A stretch of 64,000 bases of DNA, taken from positions 20,832,001 through 20,896,000 of the forward strand of contig OZ116708.1 of assembly GCA_964199315.1 (NCBI GenBank), given 5' to 3'. Shown one piece after another: positions 1-20,700 of the stretch. Under the pieces are notes generated by a model, which was not told where the DNA came from, ran no database searches, and saw only the letters and a program-made list of their open reading frames with translations. How positions within the stretch are numbered: position 1 is the first letter of the stretch; every line of letters begins with the position of its first letter. Source of the DNA: Orbicella franksi. Taxonomy: Eukaryota. The position numbers and the translations under genes were made by a program.

Positions 1-454
1 GAATACAAAGAGAGTAAAATGCACTATTTCGTTTGGTGAACTCTTTAATAATTACAACAAAAGACCTTAATTTGTGAAATTTTCTCACTTCTGGAGTAAT
101 TATGGAAGAAAGAAGCGTGCGAAGAATGGAGCTGTGCGACGATAAGATAACATTGTTAAAGTGCTTTTCAAAGTCGCATAAGACGAGATTTGTTTCGTTT
201 TTATCAATTTTAGAAGAGAACTTATAGTGTTTGTGGTACAGTTATCGCTTATCAAAAAAAAAAAAAAAACATTTTCTGATCTATATCGCTTTTTTTCGCC
301 ACAATCTGACAAAAACTCCTTAAGCGTCCTTGCTTATTTGTGAAACCATAATTGCATGCAATTTATAATTAGTACGTCTAAGTATTTGTCAGTCTTGTAC
401 AGTTATAAAGTAATTTTACTTTCTACCAGTCCTGTTCTTTGGTAGGCCTTACAT

Positions 455-505
455 GTTGGTCATTGACTTTTTTAGAATGAGTGGCTCCTAAAAGAACCGT
501 TTGTT
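455..505 (-). terminator. Histone-type 3'-end signal of copy A: stem-loop 483-498 plus ACTCA and downstream element
   Basis: Minus strand reads CAACAAAC GGTTCT TTTA GGAGCC ACTCA TTCTAAAAAAGTCAATGACCAAC. Confidence 0.65.
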
Positions 506-645: not shown

Positions 646-876
646 TTAGAATATGAGCTTTCGTTTCACACGGCTAGTTTTGTTCTTCGCCCTCTCAAAC
701 TTCATAATTTGTAGCTGCTGGGCAAAACGGGAGTGTACCAGAGTGTCCTTGACGCCTTCATCGATGGCAGATTCCTTCTCTAAAGATGTTTCTGCTGATT
801 TCCTGCATTCATCACACAGAAGGTTTTCTAGACAAGATTGTAGAAAAGCCTCGCAGACGATACATACGTCAGCCAT
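646..876 (-). CDS. Small intronless CxxC-x12-CxxC protein, family copy A (76 aa, C-terminus RVKRKLIF)
   Basis: ATG-to-stop ORF with upstream CCAAT (1014-1018) and TATAAAA (967-973) and a downstream stem-loop (483-498). 63/76 aa identical to copy B with no indels; only synonymous changes in the first 26 codons. Confidence 0.8.
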   Translation of the reverse strand: MADVCIVCEAFLQSCLENLLCDECRKSAETSLEKESAIDEGVKDTLVHSRFAQQLQIMKFERAKNKTSRVKRKLIF

Positions 877-966
877 CAGGCAATCGTTGTATACTTCTCT
901 AGTTGCTCTAGTATGAGGTCAACGAGTGAAACAGTTTTGATTGACCAAGAAAACAGCAGACAGGCT

Positions 967-1087
967 TTTTATACCTTTTAATAACAAAGGCAAAAAAACA
1001 TCGTGTTGTTTTGATTGGTGAATCATTGATAAACTCGTTAACAACGACAACAATAGCACTAAACTTGTGAAATGTTCTCACCTCGCG
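967..1087 (-). promoter_or_regulatory. Family promoter module of copy A
   Basis: GAGGTGAGAACATTTCACAAGTT (1062-1085), CCAAT and TATAAAA with about 45 bp spacing; same order as copies B and C. Confidence 0.65.
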
Positions 1088-2794
1088 TGTTCAACCAACA
1101 ATCAGTTATGTGAGCCTATTCATATTGCAATGAACCAGCAACAAAACATAGGTCAAAACAACAAGCACAAACCACAACTAAATATAAGGCAACATGAAAC
1201 TAAGTGAAACTGTGTTAATTTTGCTCTACGAGTAGTCCTTCTTTCGCTTAGGCTGTATATAGCATAGTCTATAGACAACTGGAACGACTAGAGAATTTTC
1301 AAAGACGATTGTGATTTAACTTAGAACCCAAGATTAAATAAACACCTCAAAACCAATCTTATCGAAACTTTCCGACTTGACTTTGACTATCTCGTTTAGT
1401 TATTGATGTTCTTATACCAGCAGGTTAGCATAAGCAACACACGCCGGCGAAGTAATGTACTGCCAAGTAGCTCTTTTTATCAGGAAATTGTCCTCACAAA
1501 AGGCGCTACTATCGACATTTTACAGCGTCAAAAGGTAACTGAAAATTTGGATGACCTAATTTAATAATCTAAAAGCACTTAACGCGCGGGTTGTATTGTA
1601 AGCGGGAGGTGAGAAAATATCACAACTTCACAGACCTTTAGCGTTGTAGTGACTAAGAAAATGTCGTCCGTATTACTCCAAACTGAGCCAAAACTAAATC
1701 GTTAGGAAAAATACTTGACGCAAGTTTAAAGAGCGATTTAATATGCTACCTTGGAGGGGGGGGGGGGGGGGGGTGGGGGTTGATTGGGTGTGACATGATC
1801 AACATGTCGAAGCAAGCTTTATTGGATTCAATAAGTCTGCATTTTACTAGGACCGTAATACGCGATTCAATGCCCAGTTAAGTTTTAATATGGATATATA
1901 GAGCGAAATTACATGAACACGCTGGTTTTATTGAGGGTCTGAAATGATAAAAATGTCACAATTTCAGATGTTTTGTTGAAATCGTTTGCGAGTTTTCCAT
2001 TGAAAACGAATGAAAAATTACTGGAAGTGAACTTCAGATTTACAAGATAAATAAGCCGGCTCTGCGTGCGAGATTCCGCTGGAAACCTGTGTGTTTCGCT
2101 GGCCAAATCGAAACGTTGGGATAAAGGCGTTCGTTCCCCTACGCGTGCTGTTCATAAACTCGCTCGTGCGCCAGGGCAAAAAGCCAGATGACAGGGCTTC
2201 AGTGCGACACTCAAGCACTAAAGCCTGCTCGTAGACTAGGATAAATTACAAACAAACAACTTGCCTCGAAAAGACAACTTTACAAATTTGCCGCGGAGAG
2301 AATTTATCATATACATTAATAACTTTAACATAAGTATTTTTTTAGTAATCTCATTGAAAATTACAACGTTACAATGAGTCTAAATTTATGACATTTTCAC
2401 ACCTCGCACGCACGCTAGAATAAACGCACGCGCATCCAGCCATTTAGATCGTAACTTAAGTTGATAGAGGCACTGAGGAAAACTATTCTGTTAACAAAAA
2501 ATTGCTCTACTGACACTTTTTTGTTAAAACCAGAAATATTCTCTGACATGCGTACATAAAATAAAGTGAATTTTTCAACTTTGTTTGACCTTATATTCCT
2601 AATCAGTAGCTCAGTTCAAAGTTAATTTTCCAGCAATTCCATGAAGACTCACTTCAGGCTGATAATCAGATGAGTAAGATAAAATGATTAAAATCTCATC
2701 GGAAATGCATCTGAAGAAAAATTAACACAGTTTCACTTACGTGATTTGTGCTTGGCGTTCTTTTTCGTTTAATTAGGCTTCATCAGATACATCT

Positions 2795-2924
2795 ATTGTA
2801 TTCGCGAGGTGAGAACATTTCACAAGTTCAGTGCTGTTGTTGTCATTTTTAACCAGTTCATCAATGATCCACCAATCAAAACGACGCAATTTTTTCTCCT
2901 TTGTTCCTTGTTGAAGGTATAAAA
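2795..2924 (+). promoter_or_regulatory. Family promoter module of copy B
   Basis: CTATTGT, GAGGTGAGAACATTTCACAAGTT (2806-2828), CCAAT (2872-2876), TATAAAA (2918-2924). Confidence 0.65.
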
Positions 2925-3014
2925 TGCCTGTCTGTTGTTCACTTCTTCAATCAAATCTGTTTCACTCGCTGACCTGATAATAGAGCTTTTAGAGAAGTAT
3001 ACAACGATTGCAGG

Positions 3015-3245
3015 ATGGCTGATGTATGTATCGTCTGCGAGGCTTTTCTACAATCTTGTCTAGAAAACCTTCTGTGCGATGAATGCAGGAAACCAGCAGA
3101 AACATCTTTGGAGAGGGAATCTGCCATCGATGAAGGCGTCGAGGACACTCGTTCACACTCCGGTTTTTCCCAGCGGTTCCAAATTATGAAGTTTCAGAAC
3201 GCGAAGAACAGCAGTAGCCGTGTGAAACGAAAGTTAATATTCTAA
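3015..3245 (+). CDS. Small intronless CxxC-x12-CxxC protein, family copy B (76 aa)
   Basis: Paralog of 646-876 with conserved length; synonymous substitutions GAC/GAT, TGT/TGC and CTC/TTA (the Leu of KLIF). Confidence 0.8.
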   Translation: MADVCIVCEAFLQSCLENLLCDECRKPAETSLERESAIDEGVEDTRSHSGFSQRFQIMKFQNAKNSSSRVKRKLIF

Positions 3246-3372
3246 AGTTTTAGCTTTTCAAGGACCGGCTGCAATGGTTCTTCCCGAAGATCAAGAGGAA
3301 AGCAAGCCCCGTATGTACAACAGGTCAGCAGTTCTCGATGCCAGTCTGAAGTTAGGAGGACAAGCTTTCTAC

Positions 3373-3424
3373 CAAAAAACGGCTCTTGTAGGAGCCACTC
3401 AATTTGAAAAAGTCAATGACCAAC
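3373..3424 (+). terminator. Histone-type 3'-end signal of copy B: stem-loop 3381-3396
   Basis: CAAAAAAC GGCTCT TGTA GGAGCC ACTCA ATTTGAAAAAGTCAATGACCAAC. Confidence 0.65.
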
Positions 3425-3629
3425 ATGCATGGCCTAACTGAATAAGAGAACTTTAAAACTCTTACTTTAAACTTAAATAGATTCATCTCCTCTAACGTTT
3501 TTCAAAACTGTATACAATAATAATCATAAAAAGAAAAAAAATGTTTTCTAATATAAAAAAACGCTCTCTAAATGTCATGATAGAAAAATAATAGGTCAAA
3601 TTAAGGCTATGAAACAGTTTTTACCCAGC

Positions 3630-3880
3630 AGCTATAAATGTCTTTAGGGATTTGATTCCCTTACTGACTTTATCTAAGCTATTCCAGATATTAGTCGCTC
3701 TATACTTGAAGCGGGTGCGTTGGCCGATGGCAGTTTTAGATATATGTAGCACGTCACACGTCCGAGTTTCACGGATATGAATGTTAGAACGCTTGATAAA
3801 TTTCTTGTTGAGATGTTCAAGATAGCCAGTTAAACTTGTGAAGTAGAGGAGTAACATGATCGTATTTCCTAGTTTCAGGA
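3630..3880 (-). mobile_element. 3' remnant of a CR1/L2-type LINE ORF2
   Basis: Translation KRSNIHIRETR...TAIGQR..FKYRATNIWNSL...SLKTF matches the C-terminal tail pattern of CR1/L2 reverse transcriptases. Confidence 0.7.
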
Positions 3881-4800
3881 CGCGAAGAAGGTAAAAAAGT
3901 AGACAGTAAAATTCCTTCCTAACCGTACAAGACTGGCAAACACTATAGTTAACTTTGCAAACACTGATAACTGATAAAATTAATTCACTAACGAGCAAGG
4001 ACGTTTAAGGAGTTTGTGGCAAATCAGAAAGCTCTTTTAGACAAGGGATAACTGTACCACGAACGATATAAGGTAATCTCAGGTGTTCTCTTCGGAAATT
4101 CTCAGTAGGTCTCTGTAAACCTCATAAAATTGAAACAAATGGCGTCTTATGCAGCGTTGAAAAGCACAAAGCAATGTCATCTTATCGTCAAACTGTTATC
4201 AGACATCGCAATGTTTATTTCAGGTTTTCTCTAGTTAACTAGTAATGCGCAATTCTTCGTACATTTCTATAATTACTCCACCTCCCAACAAAAATTGCTG
4301 CGTCGGTAGTCTTAACACTTGTACTAGTGTACGACGGGCTAACGATTGAAAGGTAAGTTTCACATGAAGACACACCTTTTCAGTTAATTTTCCTTTGTTC
4401 AATTTCCATTGATAAATAGCTAGCCAAGCTAAACAATTACCAAGTAATTAACATCGAATTGAGGTTGATAAAACTAAGAGGAAAGTCAAGCGCTCTGTCA
4501 AATTTGGCCCCTGACGTTTCGTGTAATGGCTCTCAGTATTAAATGACGTTTTTCAGAGTGTGTTCATCCCTAAGCTAAAAAAAACAGCAACCTAGTTTAT
4601 TGTTTATAACCGGTGATTTCATACTTTTTGCAGAAAATTTGTAGCAGCTGCAATTTTTCAATAGAAAGCCAAACCGAAGCCAATCTTATCGAAATTTCAA
4701 CCCTCACTCCAGACTAGACCTTGCTTTCTGATCTATGTTGCTCTTGTTGTTGTTTACGAATGGCTATTGTTGCTTTGCTTTTTCATTAGAATTTAAATAG

Positions 4801-6344
4801 GCAACCACCTCTTAGACCCATTGTATCCTCTATTGGAGCTTACAATTATAATTTAGCTAAGTACTTAAGTTCTCTTCTTGTTCCGCTTTTGCCTGATAAA
4901 TATTCGGTTAAGGATTCCTTTTCTTTTGTTGAAGAGCTCAGGAGTTTCGATTTTAACAACAAGTTCCTTATTTCCTTCGATGTTGAAAGCCTTTTTACAA
5001 ACATTCCGCTAAATGAAACTATCGATATTGCCGCTGACCTTATTTTGAAACATCATCCCAAATTTTCCATCAAAAAACCCGACCTTAAGAAATTGTTTTC
5101 ATTTGCCACATCCGAGACTCATTTTCTTTTCAATGGTAAATTTTATGATCAAGTCGATGGGGTAGCTATGGGCTCCCCTTTAGCACCTATTTTAGCTAAT
5201 CTTTTTCTTGGATTTCACGAAGAAACATGGCTAAATAATTTTAACAAGGCCGACATCTTACTCTATAGGCGTTATGTTGACGATACTTTTTGCGTCTTTA
5301 AAAATGAGCGGGATGCCATGTCTTTCTTTGAATTCATCAATTCTCAACAACCCAACATCAAATTTACTTTCGAGAAACAGAACGACGGTAAACTTTCCTT
5401 TTTGGATGTTCTAATTGACAACTCTTCGCATGACTGCGTTTTTTCAGTTTTTCATAAAAAAACCTACACTGGTCTCTTAACAAATTTTTTTAGTTTCGCT
5501 CCGTTTCGCTATAAAATTGGCCTTGTCCGTACTCTCATTGACCGAACTTATAAAATCAACAACACTTCTTCCGGTTTTGAAAACGATTTGATCAAGCTTT
5601 CGGACACTCTAAAACGTAACTAGTTTCCTTCACACATCATTGAAAAAACCTTCAAGCGGTATCTTAACAAGCCTTCTGATCAAAAAAGCCGCAACGTTAA
5701 TGATGAAAACAATATACGCTATTTTAAGCTTCCTTTTATCGGCCAGTATTCTAGAATAACGGAACTCAAACTACGGCAATTACTTAAACGTTTTTGTGAA
5801 ACGGATCTTAATATCAAATTAGTTTTTACTTCTTTCAAAATCAAGAATATGTTCAGTTTTAAAGATCGTACTCCTGATGCTCTAAAATCCATGGTAGTTT
5901 ATCAATTTACTTGTGCGGGATGTAATTCCTGTTATATTGGTGAAACCAGTCGCCATTTTTCTACCAGGATTAAAGAGCATACAGTAAGCGATAAAAACTC
6001 GCATATTTTTAAACATCTTTCTCAATTTTCTTCATGCAGGGGCATGTACACACCTTCTTGTTTTCGCATCTTAGACTCAGCGAATAGCTCTATTGATCTT
6101 AAACTTAAAGAAGCCTTTTATATTAGTAAGAACAAACCTGACCTTAACAAACAGTTACATCACTTCAACACCTTTTTAACTCTGTAATTTCCGTTTCCAC
6201 TGTTTTGTAATGCATATTGTAAATAATTTATTCATATTTTGTAGTATATAACTTGTGTCACGTATCATTAGTCACTCTATTAAACTGAAGATGGCATAAG
6301 CATGCCGAAACATGTCTTTAAAAACTGTTGTACGTTTTATGCAA
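4801..6344 (+). mobile_element. Penelope-like retroelement (5'-truncated): RT plus GIY-YIG endonuclease, one in-frame stop at 5621-5623
   Basis: PLRPIVS, SFDVESLFTNIP, GVAMGSPLAP, YRRYVDD (RT); VYQFTCAGCNSCYIGETSRHFSTRIKEH (GIY-YIG); frame continues after the TAG; near-identical flanks AATTTAAATAG (4790-4800) and AATTTAAAAAG (6345-6355) as candidate TSD. Confidence 0.95.
6281..6320 (+). ncRNA. Minimal type I hammerhead ribozyme at the Penelope 3' end
   Basis: TAAA CTGAAGA T GGCAT-AAGC-ATGCC GAAA CAT GTC TTTA: conserved core, 5-bp stem II, palindromic stem III (ACATGT), stem I TAAA/TTTA, GUC cleavage triplet ending at 6316. Confidence 0.8.
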
Positions 6345-6721
6345 AATTTAAAAAGACCTATCGTGCGCGTGAGTTGAGGAAACTTCACAACTTTACAAGC
6401 CTATTGTTGTTGACACTACGACATTTTAAAAACAACTCATTTTCCCCTGCTTTGTATTCTTAACGGTGTGTATAACATCCAAATAGTTTTTACTTTGTGG
6501 TAGTCCGTTCGCGCATTGAACCGCCGAGAAAAGAACATTAATGAAACTGAGAATGACGGAAGTTTAGAGAGCGAATAAAAATTCTATTTTAGTAAAAATT
6601 GATATTGGGTGAGACAGGGTTTTCCTGGACGCAACAAAATGGTTTATTTTGTTTTTTGTTTTTGTTTCCCAAATAAACTTTCTTTAACGACATGAGTTCT
6701 AAATTAAACGAACACGTGGAT

Positions 6722-6845
6722 TCTATTGTGCACGAGACTGGTGAGAAAATTTCACAAGTTTAGGTCCTTTTGTTGTTATCATTAAAGAGCCCACCAATCA
6801 AAACAGTGATTTTTTTTTGCTTTGTATTCTCTGATGTGTATAAAA
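6722..6845 (+). promoter_or_regulatory. Family promoter module of copy C
   Basis: TCTATTGT, GGTGAGAAAATTTCACAAGTT (6740-6760), CCAAT (6794-6798), TATAAAA (6839-6845). Confidence 0.65.
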
Positions 6846-6932
6846 ACAAATGTAACTGACAATGAAGTCATTTCCGCTTCATTCGGGTACTGCCCTTAAA
6901 TTCATTAGTAAGGAATCTTTTAGAACTGCGCG

Positions 6933-7148
6933 ATGGCCAATCAATGTAATGAAAGAGAAGCCTTTCTACAGCCTTGTCAAGAAAACACTCTGTGCGATGG
7001 ATGTAGGAAAACAGCAAAAACATCCTTGAAGAAGAAGTCTCCAGTGGTCGCCGAGGAGCTGGTACGTACAAAGTGTACCAAACGGCTGCGAAAATTCCAG
7101 ATCGTGGAGGTGAGACCTATCCGTGCAAGACGGAAGCTTAATTTTTAA
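6933..7148 (+). CDS. Diverged small family member, copy C (71 aa, C-terminus RARRKLNF)
   Basis: MANQCNEREAFLQPCQENTLCDGCRK aligns with copies A/B (second Cys lost); KFQIVE and terminal RKLxF are kept; same promoter and stem-loop. Confidence 0.7.
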   Translation: MANQCNEREAFLQPCQENTLCDGCRKTAKTSLKKKSPVVAEELVRTKCTKRLRKFQIVEVRPIRARRKLNF

Positions 7149-7256: not shown

Positions 7257-7307
7257 AATCAAATGGCTCCTTTAGGAGCCACTCAGTCTGAAAAGTCAAT
7301 GATTAAC
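7257..7307 (+). terminator. Histone-type 3'-end signal of copy C: stem-loop 7265-7280
   Basis: AATCAAAT GGCTCC TTTA GGAGCC ACTCA GTCTGAAAAGTCAATGATTAAC. Confidence 0.65.
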
Positions 7308-7633
7308 ATGCCTAGCTCATTACCAAGGGGTCTGGTAAGGTTTGCTGGCATCGAAGCAAACCATTCAGTTCTTTTGTAAGAGAGCTTTTTTTTTTTCATT
7401 TTCGATTTATGTAATCGCGTGATCTATGTAGCGCAGGATCGAACGTTAATGTCCGACCATGACATATTTATTTGAGTTCAAATTTGGTGTGACAGGGTTT
7501 TCCTGGTTGCAACAAAGTGGAAGCTGATCTATTTTTTTTGGTTTCACAAATCTTGCTTTTCACTAGCGACATAAAGCGATGCGCGCTTTCGAAGTGTGCT
7601 CTTTGAAGGCGAAAATTCCTTAACGTGGACGGG

Positions 7634-7636
<3 letters not shown>

Positions 7637-7677
<41 letters not shown>
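7637..7677. repeat. (TG)n microsatellite, about 20 units
   Basis: Directly visible. Confidence 0.95.
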
Positions 7678-7678
<1 letters not shown>

Positions 7679-8468
7679 TATTTTGTTTGTTTGTTTGTTT
7701 GTTTTTCATTTAATTATTCACCCCATATACAAATTTGAGTGTTGTTTACCTACATAAGTCTCTTGTGATTTTAATCGCTAGTAATCAGTGAGCTTACATT
7801 TTTGCGATGGAAGAAATCGTTTTCAAACTCTTTTCCCTCCAACTTGTCTCTCCCTTAAATTTGATCATTTTTTTGTGCCTTAATAAACTTTGATAAACAC
7901 TCGAAGTAGCACCGTCATGGTAATTTGATGGTACTTCAGTAAGTTATTTTGTCCCCGCGCATAATTACATTTAAATTGAGGGAAACCTGAAAATAGTAGT
8001 TTACTGAGACAGATAAACACTAAAGAGGTAATAATAAGCCACAAAGGAACAAGCATTGTTAAGATTAAAACGGTATAAAAACCACGAACTTGAAAAATTT
8101 GGGCTAAAATTTTCAAGATACGCAAACTGCAAAGTAGTTCCTTTAATTTCGAAGTTTCGCGTCAAAGAGATCATAGCAAGGAGGTTTTTATTTGGAGCAT
8201 TACGATTATGTGTTGTTGTTAATTTTTTTTAATGGTTGTTTTCTTTTTCGCAGGCGAAAAATGATATGAATGGACCTTAATTAGCAGTCAATAGGTGAAA
8301 GCGCGGCTTCTATTGTACGCCATCAAATGAGAAAAAATCACAAGTTTAGAACTGTTGTTGTCATCACTAACAACATCACCAATTAAAACAAAGCATTTTC
8401 CTGCTTTGCTTTTGATCCGACAGCTTGTATAAGCGACACTAAAATACGAAAACGCTAAGAAAAATAGG

Positions 8469-8998
8469 ATGACTCGGATTCTGATAGAGTTTTGCAACTG
8501 GATTAAGCAGAGACTACCGTTGCTTTCAGATTGTGGAGCGAGGCAACAACCGCGGAACCTCGAAACTTCTTGCCTGCGAACGGGCTCCCAGTTGGGATTT
8601 TGGGCAAGCGGAGCGAGTCGAGGGCGGTCTGAGGTGGAAGAGAAGGCGTGCTCATCCATCTCGACTCACTTCGCGCAACGAATTCTTCTTTATTCATTCA
8701 TTTATTTATTTATTTTGCGCTCTTTGGCTTGCTTCGCTCGCCCAACTGATTTCCCCCATCGCCGGGAGCCGCCTAGCAGGCTAAGAAACTTCTAAACAGC
8801 ATGGGGTCCCCATATACCGTGAGGAAATGGGATGTTAATTCGATCGCTTGACAATGTGCGGTTTCAACGGAAGCCTTCCGCTGCCCGGCTGCAGTAACAC
8901 AATAAAATGATGGCAGTGTCATGACTATCACAAGAACCCAAAACCACTGTTCATCTGTTGCAGCTGCTATAGTAGCCCGAGTTTCGTGTTATGTCTAA
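8469..8998 (+). pseudogene. FLYWCH family pseudogene, paralog of 15804-16322, interrupted by a MITE
   Basis: After removing 8571-8784 plus one TSD it reads EFCNWIK..DYRCFQIVERGNNRGTSKLLNSMGSPYTVRKWDVNSIA*QCAVSTEAFRCPAAVTQ*NDG..TQNHCSSVAAAIVARV. Lesions: a frameshift, two Trp-to-stop changes and HNH to QNH. Family promoter present at 8308-8433. Confidence 0.85.
8571..8784. mobile_element. MITE with imperfect TIRs and a 9-bp TSD
   Basis: Ends TGCCTGCGAACGGGCTCCC and GGGAGCCGCCTAGCAGGCTAA; GAAACTTCT duplicated at 8562-8570 and 8785-8793. Confidence 0.8.
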
Positions 8999-9566: not shown

Positions 9567-10390
9567 TTACTGTTTAAAACTTGTTGTTTGTTCACTGTTA
9601 TTGAGTAGCGGTTGTACCGGAGCCAAATAATCATAACCAAATATTTCAAAATCACTGCGGTACAACTTTCCTAACCGAGTTATGTATCGAGTGGGAACCT
9701 GGGAATAGTACTCCAACACTTCATCTGAGCCGGTTGATTTGTGGATTGGCGGGAAAGTTACGCGGTCGTCAATTCCCGCCATTTTCAGTAGCAGAGGTGC
9801 GTCGTCTTCCAAAGTCTCTAAATGACCAATGAAATCGTAGTTAATAACACACGGATGACAGAGCTGCTCGTATTGTCGCCAATGTTGATCCCGCGGCACA
9901 TCATTGGAAAAATACTGAATAAATTCAGCGAAGGTGATGTTGATGTCATTATAATCTCCATTGGGTTTATAATCTTGTGGGCGGTATGCTTTGACGATTT
10001 CGTTCCGAGCGTCCTCGCTGCATTTCCTATCCCTTCTCATAAACTTATCTTTGTAAGCAGAAAGCAAGCGATGCAGGGGTTCCCGAACGAAGAGAAATTT
10101 AAAATAAGTTTCAACTCGTTGTAATCTTTCCTCCTCTCTATATTGATACAACCATCGCCACAAATACTTGCTATGGATCTTTTGTATGTTCTTGTCGAGT
10201 CCACGAAGATCCCCTAAAACTCGTTTCCACGTTGTTGAGCTCACTTTCGGAATTGTACAGTAGATGATCTTGTTTTCATCGTCCACAAGGATAAATTCAA
10301 AGTCCCTGCCAACTGGTTTTGTCTTGTATGAGTGCGTTAGACAGTAGTTTCTCATTACCTCTTTCCTGGTAATTTGTCTTTCTGAGGCAT
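9567..10390 (-). CDS. Carbohydrate sulfotransferase (CHST11/HNK-1ST family, Sulfotransfer_2) paralog A, catalytic exon; 5' exon(s) unresolved
   Basis: 5'-PSB motif PKVSSTTW, 3'-PB motif FVREPLHRLLSAY, HWRQYEQLCHPC..YDFIGHLETL; splice acceptor TTCTTAG at 10391; remnant of an exon-1-like end (GTTGCAG) at 10507-10540. Confidence 0.9.
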
Positions 10391-15729: not shown

Positions 15730-15781
15730 GTTGGTCATTGACTTTTTCAAATTGGGTGGCTCCTAAAGGAGCCGTTTGTTG
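15730..15781 (-). terminator. Histone-type 3'-end signal of the FLYWCH gene: stem-loop 15758-15773
   Basis: Minus strand reads CAACAAAC GGCTCC TTTA GGAGCC ACCCA ATTTGAAAAAGTCAATGACCAAC, 30 nt after the stop codon. Confidence 0.7.
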
Positions 15782-15803: not shown

Positions 15804-16322
15804 CTAAATCTTGCTGTCGCCTTTGAGATCCGCTAATCGCAACTTCTCTCGGAAGCGTTTTGCGATCTTCTCAAGACATTTAGGCCGTGGCAGACTGGGG
15901 CAAGGTGCATGTGGTAATTCCTCATGAAGTACCTGCTTGACGATCTCCGACGCCGGCTTGGAGATATCGGCAGCAGCCTCGTCCCTGACACGAGACTCGA
16001 TCCGGGCTACTATAAGAGATGCAACAGATTTGCAGTGGTTGTGGGTTCTTCGGCCGAATGTGAAATCACCATTATTCCATTGTGTTACTGCAGCCGGGCA
16101 GCGGAAGCCCTCTGTTGATACCGTACACTGCCAAGCGGTCGAGTTAGCCTCTCGTTTTCTCACGGTATATGTGTACCCCATGCTGTCTAGAAGTTTCGGA
16201 GTCCCAGGGGTTGTGGCTCGCTCGACGATCTGGAAACAACGGTAGTCTTGCCATCCCAACTGAAAAGTCGACTTGATCCGGTTGCAAAACTCTGCCTCGC
16301 AAATTGTACACTCAGTGTCCAT
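15804..16322 (-). CDS. Intronless FLYWCH zinc-finger protein (172 aa), MULE-transposase-like N-terminus without a DDE domain
   Basis: WQC-x8-C-x18-HNH FLYWCH signature; N-terminus MDTECTICEA resembles MADVCIVCEA; following helical region ..PSLPRPKCLEKIAKRFREKLR resembles the pre-catalytic part of MULE transposases; ATG at 16322. Confidence 0.8.
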   Translation of the reverse strand: MDTECTICEAEFCNRIKSTFQLGWQDYRCFQIVERATTPGTPKLLDSMGYTYTVRKREANSTAWQCTVSTEGFRCPAAVTQWNNGDFTFGRRTHNHCKSVASLIVARIESRVRDEAAADISKPASEIVKQVLHEELPHAPCPSLPRPKCLEKIAKRFREKLRLADLKGDSKI

Positions 16323-17708: not shown

Positions 17709-20700
17709 CTAGTCTTTCGAGGATTGTTTCAAATGCTTTTTCACAGGACCAAGATATTCGTAGCCGAACATTTCAAAGTCATTGCGATACTGCTCTCCTA
17801 AGCGATTTATAGACTCAACGGGAACTTTTGAATAATACTTCAACACTTCAGATGGACCGGTTGATTTGTGGATTGGCGGGAAAGTTACGCGGTCGTCGAT
17901 TCCCGCCATTTGCAGCAACAAAGCCGCGTCCTCCTTTAAGGTCTCTAAGTGACCAATAAAATCGTAGTCGATAACACATGGGTGACAGAGTTTTTCATAT
18001 TGTCGCCAGTGCTGATTGCGTGACATATTGTTGGAAAAATACTGAATGAATTCTTTGAATTTAACGAAATTTTTTCCTTCTGGCTTAAAATCTTGAGGTC
18101 GAAGAGTTTGTACTATTCCTTTACGGAGGTCTTTGGTGTAGCTGGGAATTTGTAGAAACTTGTTCTTGTAGGCTGAAAGTAAGCGTTGTAGTGGTTCACG
18201 AACGAAGACAAATTTAAAATAAGTTTTAAGTCGCTCGTTCCTTTCTTCCTCAGTGTAATTGCTTAAACGTTTCCACATAATCCAGCGGTTGATTCCTGGC
18301 TTAATTTCGTGAGATTTTGCAATCACTCTTTTCCATGTCGAAGTTCCTACCTTGGGCACTACGCAGTAGATGAATTTTAAGTCATCGTCGACTGCAAGCA
18401 TGTGCACATCTTCTGTTCCAAGACTCTTGTTGCAGGTGTGTTTACGACAGTATTCTTGAAGGTGTTGCTTTCTGGCTGTTTGCCTTTCTTCGGCAGCCTT
18501 GTGCGGGTTATTGAGTTCTTCCTCAACTTGTCGCTCGCTGGGTGTTTGTCTTTCTCTGCGACTTACGTCCGAAAGATTGAGATTTCCCTTAACTTGTTCA
18601 TCTCTGGCTCTTTGTCTTTCTCCGGGACTTATGTCTGGAGCATTGGGGTTCTCCTTAACTTGTTGATCTCTTGCTGTTTGCCCTTTTTTGACTGTTATGT
18701 CCGGGGCATTGGTGTTTTTCTGCGTTAGGAAAAAATGTAGTTATGGGTCATTAACTTGAACAAGTGTTGGTGTGTTTAGTTTGCACTAAGTTAACCTCTT
18801 TTTTGGTTGTTCAAGGGATTAAATGTTCGTCCCAAGACAATACCCATGGGGAATTTTAAAAGAGCAACTTCGTAGATGCTGCATGTTGGCAAACTTTTAG
18901 TTTTGTCTTTCACTATCGGAAATTTAAACCAACCTTGTTGCTATTTAGTTTATTTCTTGAGATCTGTTTTCGTTTTTCTTTTTTATGGCCTTGTTTTGTT
19001 TGCTTGTTTGTTTTCCTATCTTACTAAGCGATTGTTTTAAGCTTTTCTTGTCATATGTTTGCCGTTTCAATATTTGGTCTGATAATTTGAATAAAACAGA
19101 TTCTTTACAGTTAATGATCTTCTTTAATCTCATCTGTCCGTTGACTAAGGTTTTCTTATTTCTTTATTTCTTTCTTTCTTTCTTTCTTTCTTTCTTTATT
19201 TATTCATTTATTTTATTTTTTTTTTTTTTTATGTGACAATGGTAAATAAGGTTTTGATCAATTCATTTTCTTGTTGTTTAACTTATGGCGAAGCAAAGGA
19301 GGCTGTAGTTACTTTCAGTCCTCGGAACCCTGTCTTTTCCTGTGGAAAAGTAGCTGAAAATGACAAAAAAGAAACATCTATTAAAAATAGTGCATATTGA
19401 AAGATGTAGATGAGTTTTTCAAGCTCGCCGTTCCTAATCTGTCTTAATCTTTCCAAACGTAAACAGCTATGCTCCAGCCAACTGGCTTTTTTGTACTCTG
19501 CTAAACTGTTATTTTTATGCTTTCTTTGATGTGACGTGATGTTATTTTCTGTGTCGACTTGGCAAAAAGGCGTGAGGTCAGGATGGCTGGATGTTGGCCG
19601 AGTTCTATTTTTTTCCGTTCATTTGGAAAAAAAAGAAAAGAAACGACAACGTCGTAAATATGTTCAGCCATCTTGACCGAACAAGCTTAGTCAATAAAGG
19701 ATTTATTATATGGAAAAAGAATACTGTTTTCTTCCGGGACACAGCGGTTAGTTCTGAGCGGGCAATATGGCGCTATCTTGCGCTAGATTAGCATATATGT
19801 TACACATCTAAAACCAACAGCCAGTTGTTTGAGTGGCAGAACTTAGTTAATTCATCCATGCAAACAATGTTGCAAGGTCAGCTGTAAAATTACCGTCGAC
19901 TAAACGCTACCGAGGAAACTCGATTCGATATTCAGATTGTAAGCTTTGACAAGTATTTATTTGTACTCCCCTTTTTTACTGTTTCGAAGGGTAAATATAT
20001 TGTGATGTCAGACATCGTTACAGTATTTATAGCGAACAATATGCTGTATTATCGAGTAATAGAATTCCCATTGTATGCAGTACTTGGATGTTGTTTAGCA
20101 AGTCATGGTTGCCATAGGAAATTGTTCAATACTTGAGTTTTCATTAGCTATGGGTGTTAAGATAAGTGGCTTTGAATTATTTTTTTAATTTAGTTGCTTT
20201 TAACGAACAGAATTGTCATGTGCTGCCCGTAATGTTACCATTTTAAACTGATAAAAAGCACAGTTTAGGGCGCAAGTTTTTTTTTTTTTTTTTTCTTTTG
20301 ACGCTATGTTATTTGATTTTCAAAGTCCTTAACATTCGATTCACATTCATGTACAGTCAATCTCTTGGCAGCAGTTCCGTTGATTACGGTTGAAACTTCA
20401 GCTATCGGTAATTAAAAATGCAGAGAAAAAGGCTTAAGTTTGCTTTGGTTATCATTTTATTGTTAGTCAGAGAATATTCGACCCAACAAATTTACTTGCA
20501 GAGACTTTTATGACTAAGTCCAGCTGTGAACTTTGTATTACCGCGCAACCAACCACAGTAAGTGACATTCGTTAATGCGTCTGACACTTTCTGACTCATT
20601 TCCAAGCGATCTAAAAACAAGAAGGCTACTATAGTAAAATGGAAAGGAAAGAAAGAAAAACGAAATCAAATGAACAGACAACAAAACGAGCGGCTACTGA

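Follow-up and report, generated by a model that had tools for sequence, protein, structure and literature searches.

Micro-protein genes with histone-type 3′ ends, related to leader-FLYWCH proteins, in Orbicella franksi

Micro-protein genes at the locus

Three small genes, named A, B and C here, were analysed in a window of 64,000 nucleotides (nt) of the Orbicella franksi genome (NCBI GenBank assembly GCA_964199315.1, contig OZ116708.1, positions 20,832,001 to 20,896,000, forward strand; positions below are those of the window unless a contig is given). By comparison with their relatives, they belong to a stony-coral family of predicted proteins of about 8.5 kDa that are under selection at the protein level. 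A first-pass annotation had listed three open reading frames (ORFs) as copies of such a family; all three were found in the window, and the three-ORF observation exceeds chance.

646..876, minus strand: micro-protein gene A, AB-type, 76 codons (ORF list); start MADVCIVCEAFLQSCLENLLCDECRK, end RVKRKLIF
3015..3245, plus strand: micro-protein gene B, AB-type, 76 codons, head-to-head with A (ORF list)
6933..7148, plus strand: micro-protein gene C, C-type, 71 codons, without the first CxxC (ORF list); conserved tail RLRKFQIVEVRPIRARRKLNF

The products of A and B were the same at 63 of 76 residues with no indels, as first reported, and their genes differed at 23 nucleotides (6 synonymous and 17 non-synonymous). 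Residues 1–26 were identical, the only two changes in these codons being synonymous (GAC/GAT at codon 3 and TGT/TGC at codon 21), so that 2 differences fell in the first 78 nt and the other 21 in the 150 nt that follow (Fisher p 0.005). Leu74 is encoded by CTC in A and TTA in B, again in agreement with the earlier reading. Copy C retained CDGC, FQIVE and RRKLNF, and reads C-N-E-R where A and B have CIVC; because C is without the first CxxC, the C4 set is not family-wide. Computed masses of the three products were 8.3–8.7 kDa, and the net charge of the AB-type was −7 to −9 over the first 45 residues and +8 over the rest.

Gene units and 3′ ends

Aligning the DNA of A, B and C with that of the nearby FLYWCH gene D revealed shared gene signals. 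Stem-loops were scored against the Rfam family RF00032 (histone 3′ stem-loop; a stem of six base pairs, a loop of four bases and an ACCCA-like flank), for which the gathering score is 34.

967..1080, minus strand: promoter of A, with motif TGAGAACATTTCACAAGTT at 1062-1080, CCAAT at 1014-1018 and TATAAAA at 967-973; read from the sequence, conserved across copies and species
2810..2924, plus strand: promoter of B, with the same motif at 2810-2828, CCAAT at 2872-2876 and TATAAAA at 2918-2924; conserved across copies and species
6742..6845, plus strand: promoter of C, with motif TGAGAAAATTTCACAAGTT at 6742-6760, CCAAT, and TATAAAA at about 6839-6845; from a nine-copy alignment
459..503, minus strand: stem-loop and downstream element of A, stem GGTTCT/GGAGCC with two G-U pairs; RF00032 26.6 bits; element AAAGTCAATGACCAA
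3376..3420, plus strand: stem-loop and downstream element of B, loop TGTA; RF00032 25.5 bits; element matched
7260..7304, plus strand: stem-loop and downstream element of C; RF00032 32.1 bits, E 7e-6; kept across nine C-type copies
15804-16322, minus strand: FLYWCH paralog D, intact, 172 residues, shortened leader (MDTECTICEAEF ... FQIVE); Pfam FLYWCH
15734..15778, minus strand: stem-loop and downstream element of D; RF00032 35.3 bits, above the gathering score

A, B and C are whole small genes rather than bare ORFs, each forming a compact unit without introns and roughly 470 nt long. In all three, the upstream motif TGAGAA(A/C)ATTTCACAAGTT was located about 190–205 nt before the ATG, followed by a CCAAT box and by TATAAAA at −94 to −97 (97 nt before the ATG in both A and B). 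The stem-loop lies 117–148 nt after the stop codon, and a downstream element follows about 12 nt past it, reading AAAGTCAATGACCAA in A, B and D and AAAGTCAATGATTAA in C. Of these four stem-loops D alone scored above the Rfam gathering score, that of C also falling under it. D aligned poorly at the upstream motif, and a motif scan found the motif absent from D itself and present in a near-copy of D (C11:20823363-20823878) and in a decayed relic 3′ of C. Splicing of the micro-protein ORFs onto a downstream FLYWCH exon was considered and rejected, as no GT donor occurs before the stop codon, past which the stem-loop is found at the above distance.

For comparison with histone genes, one unit of the H1-H2B-H2A-H4-H3 repeat of the same genome was used (C10:600000-606600). 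These canonical genes end in the same stem-loop variants, including GGCTCT/GGAGCC, and the purine-rich downstream element of the micro-genes is like that of this genome's own histone genes, being identical in H3 (AAAGTCAATGACCAA) and present as close variants in H1 and H2B. The stem-loop and downstream element from which S-phase expression would follow are present and conserved. The micro-genes resemble replication-dependent histone genes in being short and intronless, in their TATA and CCAAT boxes, and in carrying the same stem-loop and downstream element as the H1/H2A/H2B/H3/H4 repeat, but their products are not histones. The upstream motif TGAGAAAATTTCACAAGTT was not found in the histone repeat, so only the 3′ end of the units is histone-like. 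The histone stem-loop pathway is described as specific to replication-dependent histone mRNAs (PMC3763545 and PMC12775136). Literature searches on non-histone stem-loop genes, and on FLYWCH with coral, returned nothing relevant.

Further copies of the promoter motif (TGAGAAAATNTCACAAGTT) occur in spacers without an ORF, at 1610 (+), 2401 (−) and 6375 (+) of the window and at several sites in four loci of other assemblies (L030, L031, L033 and L034), often with several standing 5′ to an AB-type gene; either remnants of dead units or a binding site present in repeats could explain them. Other non-histone ORFs in the genome also precede the same stem-loop and downstream element (G000:C9:21236800-21240200, L040, and genome-wide), among them one 131-residue Cys-rich ORF and one with a sub-threshold ISXO2-like transposase match (E 3e-4). 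All scored Rfam Histone3 matches (75/75) were above threshold, and many of them map elsewhere than the tandem histone array at C10:600-770 kb.

Relatives in other coral assemblies

A protein search returned 34 related clusters with 67–95% identity, nearly all of 76–77 residues, and an exhaustive search with a family profile among 1.84 billion representatives returned 16 clusters at 50% identity. The family is real but narrow, given only 16 clusters in a collection of that size. Named members came from the stony corals Oculina patagonica and Desmophyllum pertusum (suborder Vacatina) and are hypothetical proteins. The claim that the family is undescribed stood, as it has no Pfam family and all named entries carry the NCBI label 'hypothetical protein'. 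DNA of ten loci from other coral-derived assemblies was examined by tBLASTn irrespective of ORF intactness.

Two sub-types were distinguished. AB-type proteins start with MADVCIVCEAFLQSCLENLLCDECRK and end with RVKRKLIF, and C-type proteins start with MANQC, continue with LCDGCRK and end with RPKCAKRLRKFQIVEVRPIRARRKLNF. An AB-type gene is followed by a C-type gene about 2 kb downstream in L030, L031, L034 and L039, and in L032 and L033 the family members adjoin sulfotransferase genes; since this order and these neighbours recur in other assemblies, both the pair and its position are conserved. C-type copies were intact in L030–L033. Beyond the Orbicella franksi genome, two or more named coral families have retained the micro-form. 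Public runs that contain the stretch carry the label of coral metagenome or of coded coral species. In the 497-Mb Orbicella franksi assembly (G000), three intact copies and one broken C-type copy were found, all at one locus (contig C11).

Relationship to leader-FLYWCH proteins

The profile search also returned P0045, a protein of 196 residues whose cluster mate is Oculina patagonica KAL9960350.1; P0059 adjoins P0045 on the same contig. In P0045, P0046 and P0059 a whole leader is fused to a FLYWCH domain and a D-like tail, and a search for longer proteins with the leader gave P0045 and P0059 only. The leader of the full-length relatives reads CIIC ... CDGC ... FQVAE/FQIVE, then GKRMLIDSLGYTY or NPKLIDSFGYTY, and then the FLYWCH domain; such domains have about 60 residues and a conserved F/Y...W...C...C...H...H pattern.

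A, B and C aligned end to end with the P0045-type leader at 33–44% identity. The terminal KRKLIF aligned with GKRMLIDSLGYTY / TPKLLDSMGYTY, the first FLYWCH strand, KRKLIF and RRKLNF standing opposite (G)KRMLID. The micro-proteins stop three to four residues into the FLYWCH domain (at the positions aligned with D residues 43–46), and none of the three gave a match to Pfam FLYWCH (PF04500). Alignment thus identifies them as FLYWCH-less paralogs that consist of the leader of a leader-FLYWCH parent. Their common features with FLYWCH proteins such as D and KAL9960350.1 are the leader pattern CxxC ... CDGC ... FQIVE ... KxL, the promoter motif held in common with the D near-copy and the decayed relic, and the stem-loop held in common with D and its near-copy. 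D keeps the FLYWCH domain and tail and has lost the middle of the leader; its Pfam FLYWCH match (27.5 bits versus a cut-off of 23.6) begins at residue 44.

In Oculina patagonica the full-length gene ACROYT_G033797 and the micro-form G033798 have consecutive locus tags, which places the two side by side; the micro-form product KAL9960351.1 follows KAL9960350.1 and ends in VKRRLHFSIRKE. The comparison shows that a small 'leader + FLYWCH + tail' gene was duplicated in tandem and that all sequence beyond the first FLYWCH residues was then lost. An alternative raised earlier, that the RKL string was inherited from the first FLYWCH strand, is borne out by the alignment with the full-length relatives.

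Cysteine-rich head

The head had been described as half of a PHD finger. PHD fingers have eight zinc ligands in a C4HC3 arrangement and bind two zinc ions in a cross-brace. The AB-type spacing CxxC-x12-CxxC fits the first half of this arrangement, and AB-type Cys 5, 8, 15, 21 and 24 were each at least 90% conserved. In contrast to a PHD finger, the AB-type has five Cys in all, H48 is not conserved and the His-Cys3 second half is missing; Cys8 is absent from all C-type copies and Cys21 from some. A Pfam scan of A, B and C up to E 10 gave no match to PHD or any other zinc-finger family, its sole match being a RING model on copy C (E 0.048). The family profile matched nothing below E 3 among PDB sequences, and an ESM Atlas feature search returned only unnamed small clusters. 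AlphaFold2, run on the family alignment, gave an all-helical model with a predicted local distance difference test (pLDDT) of 54 and a predicted template modelling score (pTM) of 0.24. The half-PHD assignment is not supported, given the lack of a Pfam or PDB match, the low-confidence helical model and the absence of Cys8 from the C-type. A single Cys4 zinc site in the AB-type is plausible, if generic.

C-terminal tail and possible cyclin docking

The tail has the consensus [RK]R[RK]LxF, occurring at the C-terminus as KRKLIF and RRKLNF here and as KRRLHF and RRKLIF in Oculina/Desmophyllum forms. Its low pLDDT is consistent with disorder. The string fits three readings: an RxL docking motif, a basic nuclear localization signal and a retained beta-strand. 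The first of these, favoured by the first-pass annotation, would make the micro-proteins ligands or decoys of cyclin A/E–CDK (cyclin-dependent kinase), acting as an S-phase substrate, an inhibitor or a competitor for the hydrophobic patch. The tail agrees with the RxL pattern [RK]-x-L-x(0,1)-hydrophobic and is nearly the docking string at the C-terminus of p21, 154-KRRLIF-159 (PMC11476297). It is also the most constrained part of the protein (omega 0.19 in the AB-type and 0.12 in the C-type, see below) and is retained in the forms from the two other corals; the histone-type 3′ end would put expression in S phase, and the genome encodes a cyclin A (exon L043:1450-1839:-) with an intact MRAILVDW helix. 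Against this, strings of the RxL type are short and common, KRK would equally suit a nuclear localization signal, and the tail is inherited from the first FLYWCH strand, so that its presence needs no cyclin. Docking on cyclin, to which the sequence pattern points, is on balance considered unlikely. A complex prediction for A residues 40–76 with residues 1–100 of the cyclin A exon gave a score of 0.03, which is no evidence for or against docking.

With p21(Cip1), the micro-proteins have in common a near-identical string at the very C-terminus, its basic context and a likely S-phase setting. They are not homologous to it, and the FLYWCH strand explains where their tail comes from.

Residues 54–60 of the AB-type (A 697-717, B 3174-3194) read Q-L-Q-I-M-K-F and fit QxxIxxF, with ten residues (61–70) between this string and KRKLIF. 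It is common in the AB-type and absent in the C-type. QxxIxxF resembles a one-aromatic, degenerate PCNA-interaction box, and its order relative to KRKLIF is that of the p21 C-terminus.

Selection on the coding sequence

Purifying selection had been claimed from A and B. These two gave a ratio of non-synonymous to synonymous substitution (dN/dS) of 0.75 by the Nei–Gojobori method, which was not significant, and with nine AB-type copies omega was 0.68 (likelihood-ratio statistic 2.8 against omega = 1, p about 0.1). A and B alone therefore do not establish the claim, which was supported with a larger set of relatives from other coral assemblies. The main codon test used the GY94+F3X4 model on a fixed tree, with 15 AB-type copies and 5 intact C-type copies.

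AB-type, whole ORF: omega 0.53, p 3e-5
AB-type, codons 1-26: omega 0.37, p 6e-4
AB-type, codons 27-66: omega 0.78, not significant
AB-type, last ten codons: omega 0.19, p 6e-5
C-type (5 intact copies), whole ORF: omega 0.30, p 5e-7
C-type, codons 46-71: omega 0.12, p 8e-6

Across relatives dN/dS was thus below 1 in both sub-types, which was the check proposed in the first-pass annotation, and in the AB-type both ends were more constrained than the middle, as had been predicted. These values support an end constraint that is moderate for the AB-type and clear for the C-type tail. In a six-frame control the annotated frame had the lowest omega. Diversity at codon positions 1, 2 and 3 was 0.069/0.038/0.242 in C-type codons 46–71 and 0.090/0.087/0.214 in the AB-type tail. 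Identity between A and B was 90% in the coding sequence, 80% upstream and 83% downstream. Over the 15 AB-type copies the coding sequence had a mean pairwise difference of 0.137, the promoter and untranslated regions (UTRs) one of about 0.33 and the stem-loop region one of 0.21, the coding sequence being about 2.4 times less diverged than the UTRs.

These data bear on the possibility that the ORFs are non-functional relics, decaying leftovers of duplicated FLYWCH genes that are similar through recent duplication or gene conversion. The non-significant A/B ratio would fit, as would the dead paralogs in the cluster (a broken C-type copy, stop-bearing FLYWCH fragments and a D near-copy with a TAG), the four broken copies among nine C-type copies and the preference of the protein database for intact ORFs. 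Decay does not predict an omega significantly below 1 in both sub-types, the excess of third-position differences in the tails or the low divergence of the coding sequence relative to the UTRs; nor does it predict a micro-form kept in at least two further named coral families with its promoter and stem-loop conserved. Relics are for these reasons held to be improbable.

Constraint could alternatively act on the transcript or the locus and not on the peptide, for example on an RNA that titrates stem-loop binding protein or U7, or on a regulatory module, the ORF being incidental, especially in the C-type. The C-type promoter is among the best-conserved parts of its unit (mean pairwise difference over nine copies 0.129, versus 0.123 for the stem-loop), both differing less than the coding sequence (0.183). 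Promoter, stem-loop and conserved tail sequence persist in broken C-type copies, and divergence in the AB-type is lower at synonymous sites (0.171) than in the UTRs (about 0.33). However, the codon-position pattern and a tail omega of 0.12–0.19 are predicted by protein coding and not by an RNA element, and omega is lower in the annotated frame than in the other five, which leaves this explanation quite improbable.

That the ORFs encode peptides of a transposon, either a non-autonomous Mutator-like element or one that bears FLYWCH, and are conserved since the copies are young, is highly improbable, and a transposon origin was rejected for the copies now present. FLYWCH domains frequently derive from transposases and retroelement fragments adjoin several copies, but there are only four copies in 497 Mb, all at one syntenic locus, their place beside sulfotransferase genes is conserved between assemblies, and their flanks diverge gradually without sharp repeat borders.

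Transcription

Transcription of B is weakly indicated by a poly(A) RNA-seq contig (2701-3268, depth 24, one study) that covers the gene, and runs of the same study hold 41–47% of the sequence words of the C stretch. Libraries selected for poly(A) would be expected to be poor in stem-loop mRNAs. The runs used were assembled into contigs or poly(A)-selected. Two further runs labelled as RNA (X1 and X2) cover genes and spacers alike, as DNA carry-over would, and were not counted as expression. In contigs from the RNA-labelled runs, 3 of 4 listed variants within the B ORF were synonymous.

Interpretation

MicroProteins are small proteins related to a larger multi-domain regulator and without its functional domain (PMC12329180). 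A, B and C are best read as truncated paralogs of this type, nuclear, expressed through the histone pathway with a weighting to S phase, and competing for partners of the leader; to this reading a probability of about 0.55 is given. The size of microProteins is about 7–20 kDa, and they form non-productive complexes with the parent or its partners; Id proteins, LITTLE ZIPPER and MIF are examples. The products of A, B and C at 8.3–8.7 kDa fall in this range and align over their full length to the leader of the leader-FLYWCH proteins.

In the proposed mechanism, the mRNAs would be processed like histone mRNAs and would peak in S phase. The protein would be nuclear, with the KRK tail serving as a monopartite nuclear localization signal, and the AB-type head may bind one zinc ion. 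Keeping the leader of the parent without its DNA-binding domain, the micro-protein could compete for partners of the leader or of the first-strand motif, and this competition might modulate the co-clustered FLYWCH paralogs or their partners.

Like known microProteins, these proteins are small, match one part of a larger DNA-binding protein and are encoded by separate genes beside full-length paralogs. They differ in that the parent is a FLYWCH protein, that the retained part is an uncharacterized leader and not a known dimerization domain, and that the genes have a histone-type 3′ end. We know of no described microProtein of a FLYWCH protein.

Several observations weigh against reading A, B and C as competing microProteins. 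D, the only intact FLYWCH paralog nearby, is without most of the leader, including the second CxxC, so that leader–leader competition with D is not obvious. The stem-loops of A and B score below the Rfam gathering score of 34, the ends of the contig 2701-3268 mismatch the predicted start and stem-loop, and the uniform coverage in X1 and X2 resembles DNA carry-over. The AB-type omega of 0.53 is a moderate constraint only, and the six-frame control was moderately discriminating, three off-frames giving omega 0.63–0.77. Among the copies found regardless of intactness, 4 of 9 C-type copies were broken, and three AB-type copies had no stop after KLIF and ran on for a few or more residues. The fold prediction, with pLDDT 54, was not confident.

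A further combination, in which a FLYWCH protein and its FLYWCH-less antagonists are made in S phase only through the histone pathway and KRKLIF is a p21-like cyclin A/E–CDK docking site, possibly together with QxxIxxF, appears rather doubtful. If it were true, stony corals would have a lineage-specific S-phase regulator or a class of CDK substrate.

Very short genes are often missed or labelled 'hypothetical', and comparison alone was sufficient here to show a family of 71–76 codons to be conserved, protein-constrained and traceable to a parent. To our knowledge, the microProtein reading of A, B and C would make them the first derivatives of this type from a FLYWCH protein. The micro-genes and their parent offer a test case for non-histone mRNAs that use the histone stem-loop pathway, and for coral biology they suggest a lineage-restricted factor probably tied to DNA replication.

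Neighbouring features

The local order is a broken C-type copy and A (minus strand), B and C (plus strand), a decayed FLYWCH copy, and lastly D with one sulfotransferase gene before it and two after it, the sulfotransferase genes being interleaved with the FLYWCH and micro-gene copies.

69..87, minus strand: promoter motif of the fourth, broken C-type copy (motif scan)
4889-6187, plus strand: Penelope-like retroelement fragment between B and C (RVT_1 E 4e-9, then GIY-YIG E 7e-6)
8328..8998, plus strand: decayed FLYWCH-type paralog 3′ of C, with motif at 8328 and remnant EFCNWIKQRL
9567-10355, 17709-18407 and 25076-25822, all minus strand: carbohydrate sulfotransferase genes, three paralogs (Pfam Sulfotransfer_2)

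The ORF of the broken C-type copy, interrupted by two stop codons, lies just left of the window (G000:C11:20831670-20831876, minus strand); the stem-loop of this copy has a mismatch. The FLYWCH fragment of the decayed paralog, at 8780-8998, has three stops. The sulfotransferase gene at 9567-10355 was called by Pfam scan (E 5e-54) and the other two by sequence similarity. B and C are 3.7 kb apart, compared with about 2 kb between the sub-types in other assemblies, because of the Penelope-like insertion.

The near-copy of D, a second D-type FLYWCH gene left of the window (G000:C11:20823363-20823878, plus strand), is 86% identical to D and has one in-frame TAG, its own promoter motif, and a perfect stem-loop with downstream element. 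Reverse-transcriptase ORFs adjoin family members in L030, L034 and L038 too. A (TG)n microsatellite is located just downstream of C (about 7620-7680), a run of N (assembly gap) lies near 49.8–50.1 kb of the window, and at 1757-1790 there is a run of about 30 G bases at which the contigs of all runs break.

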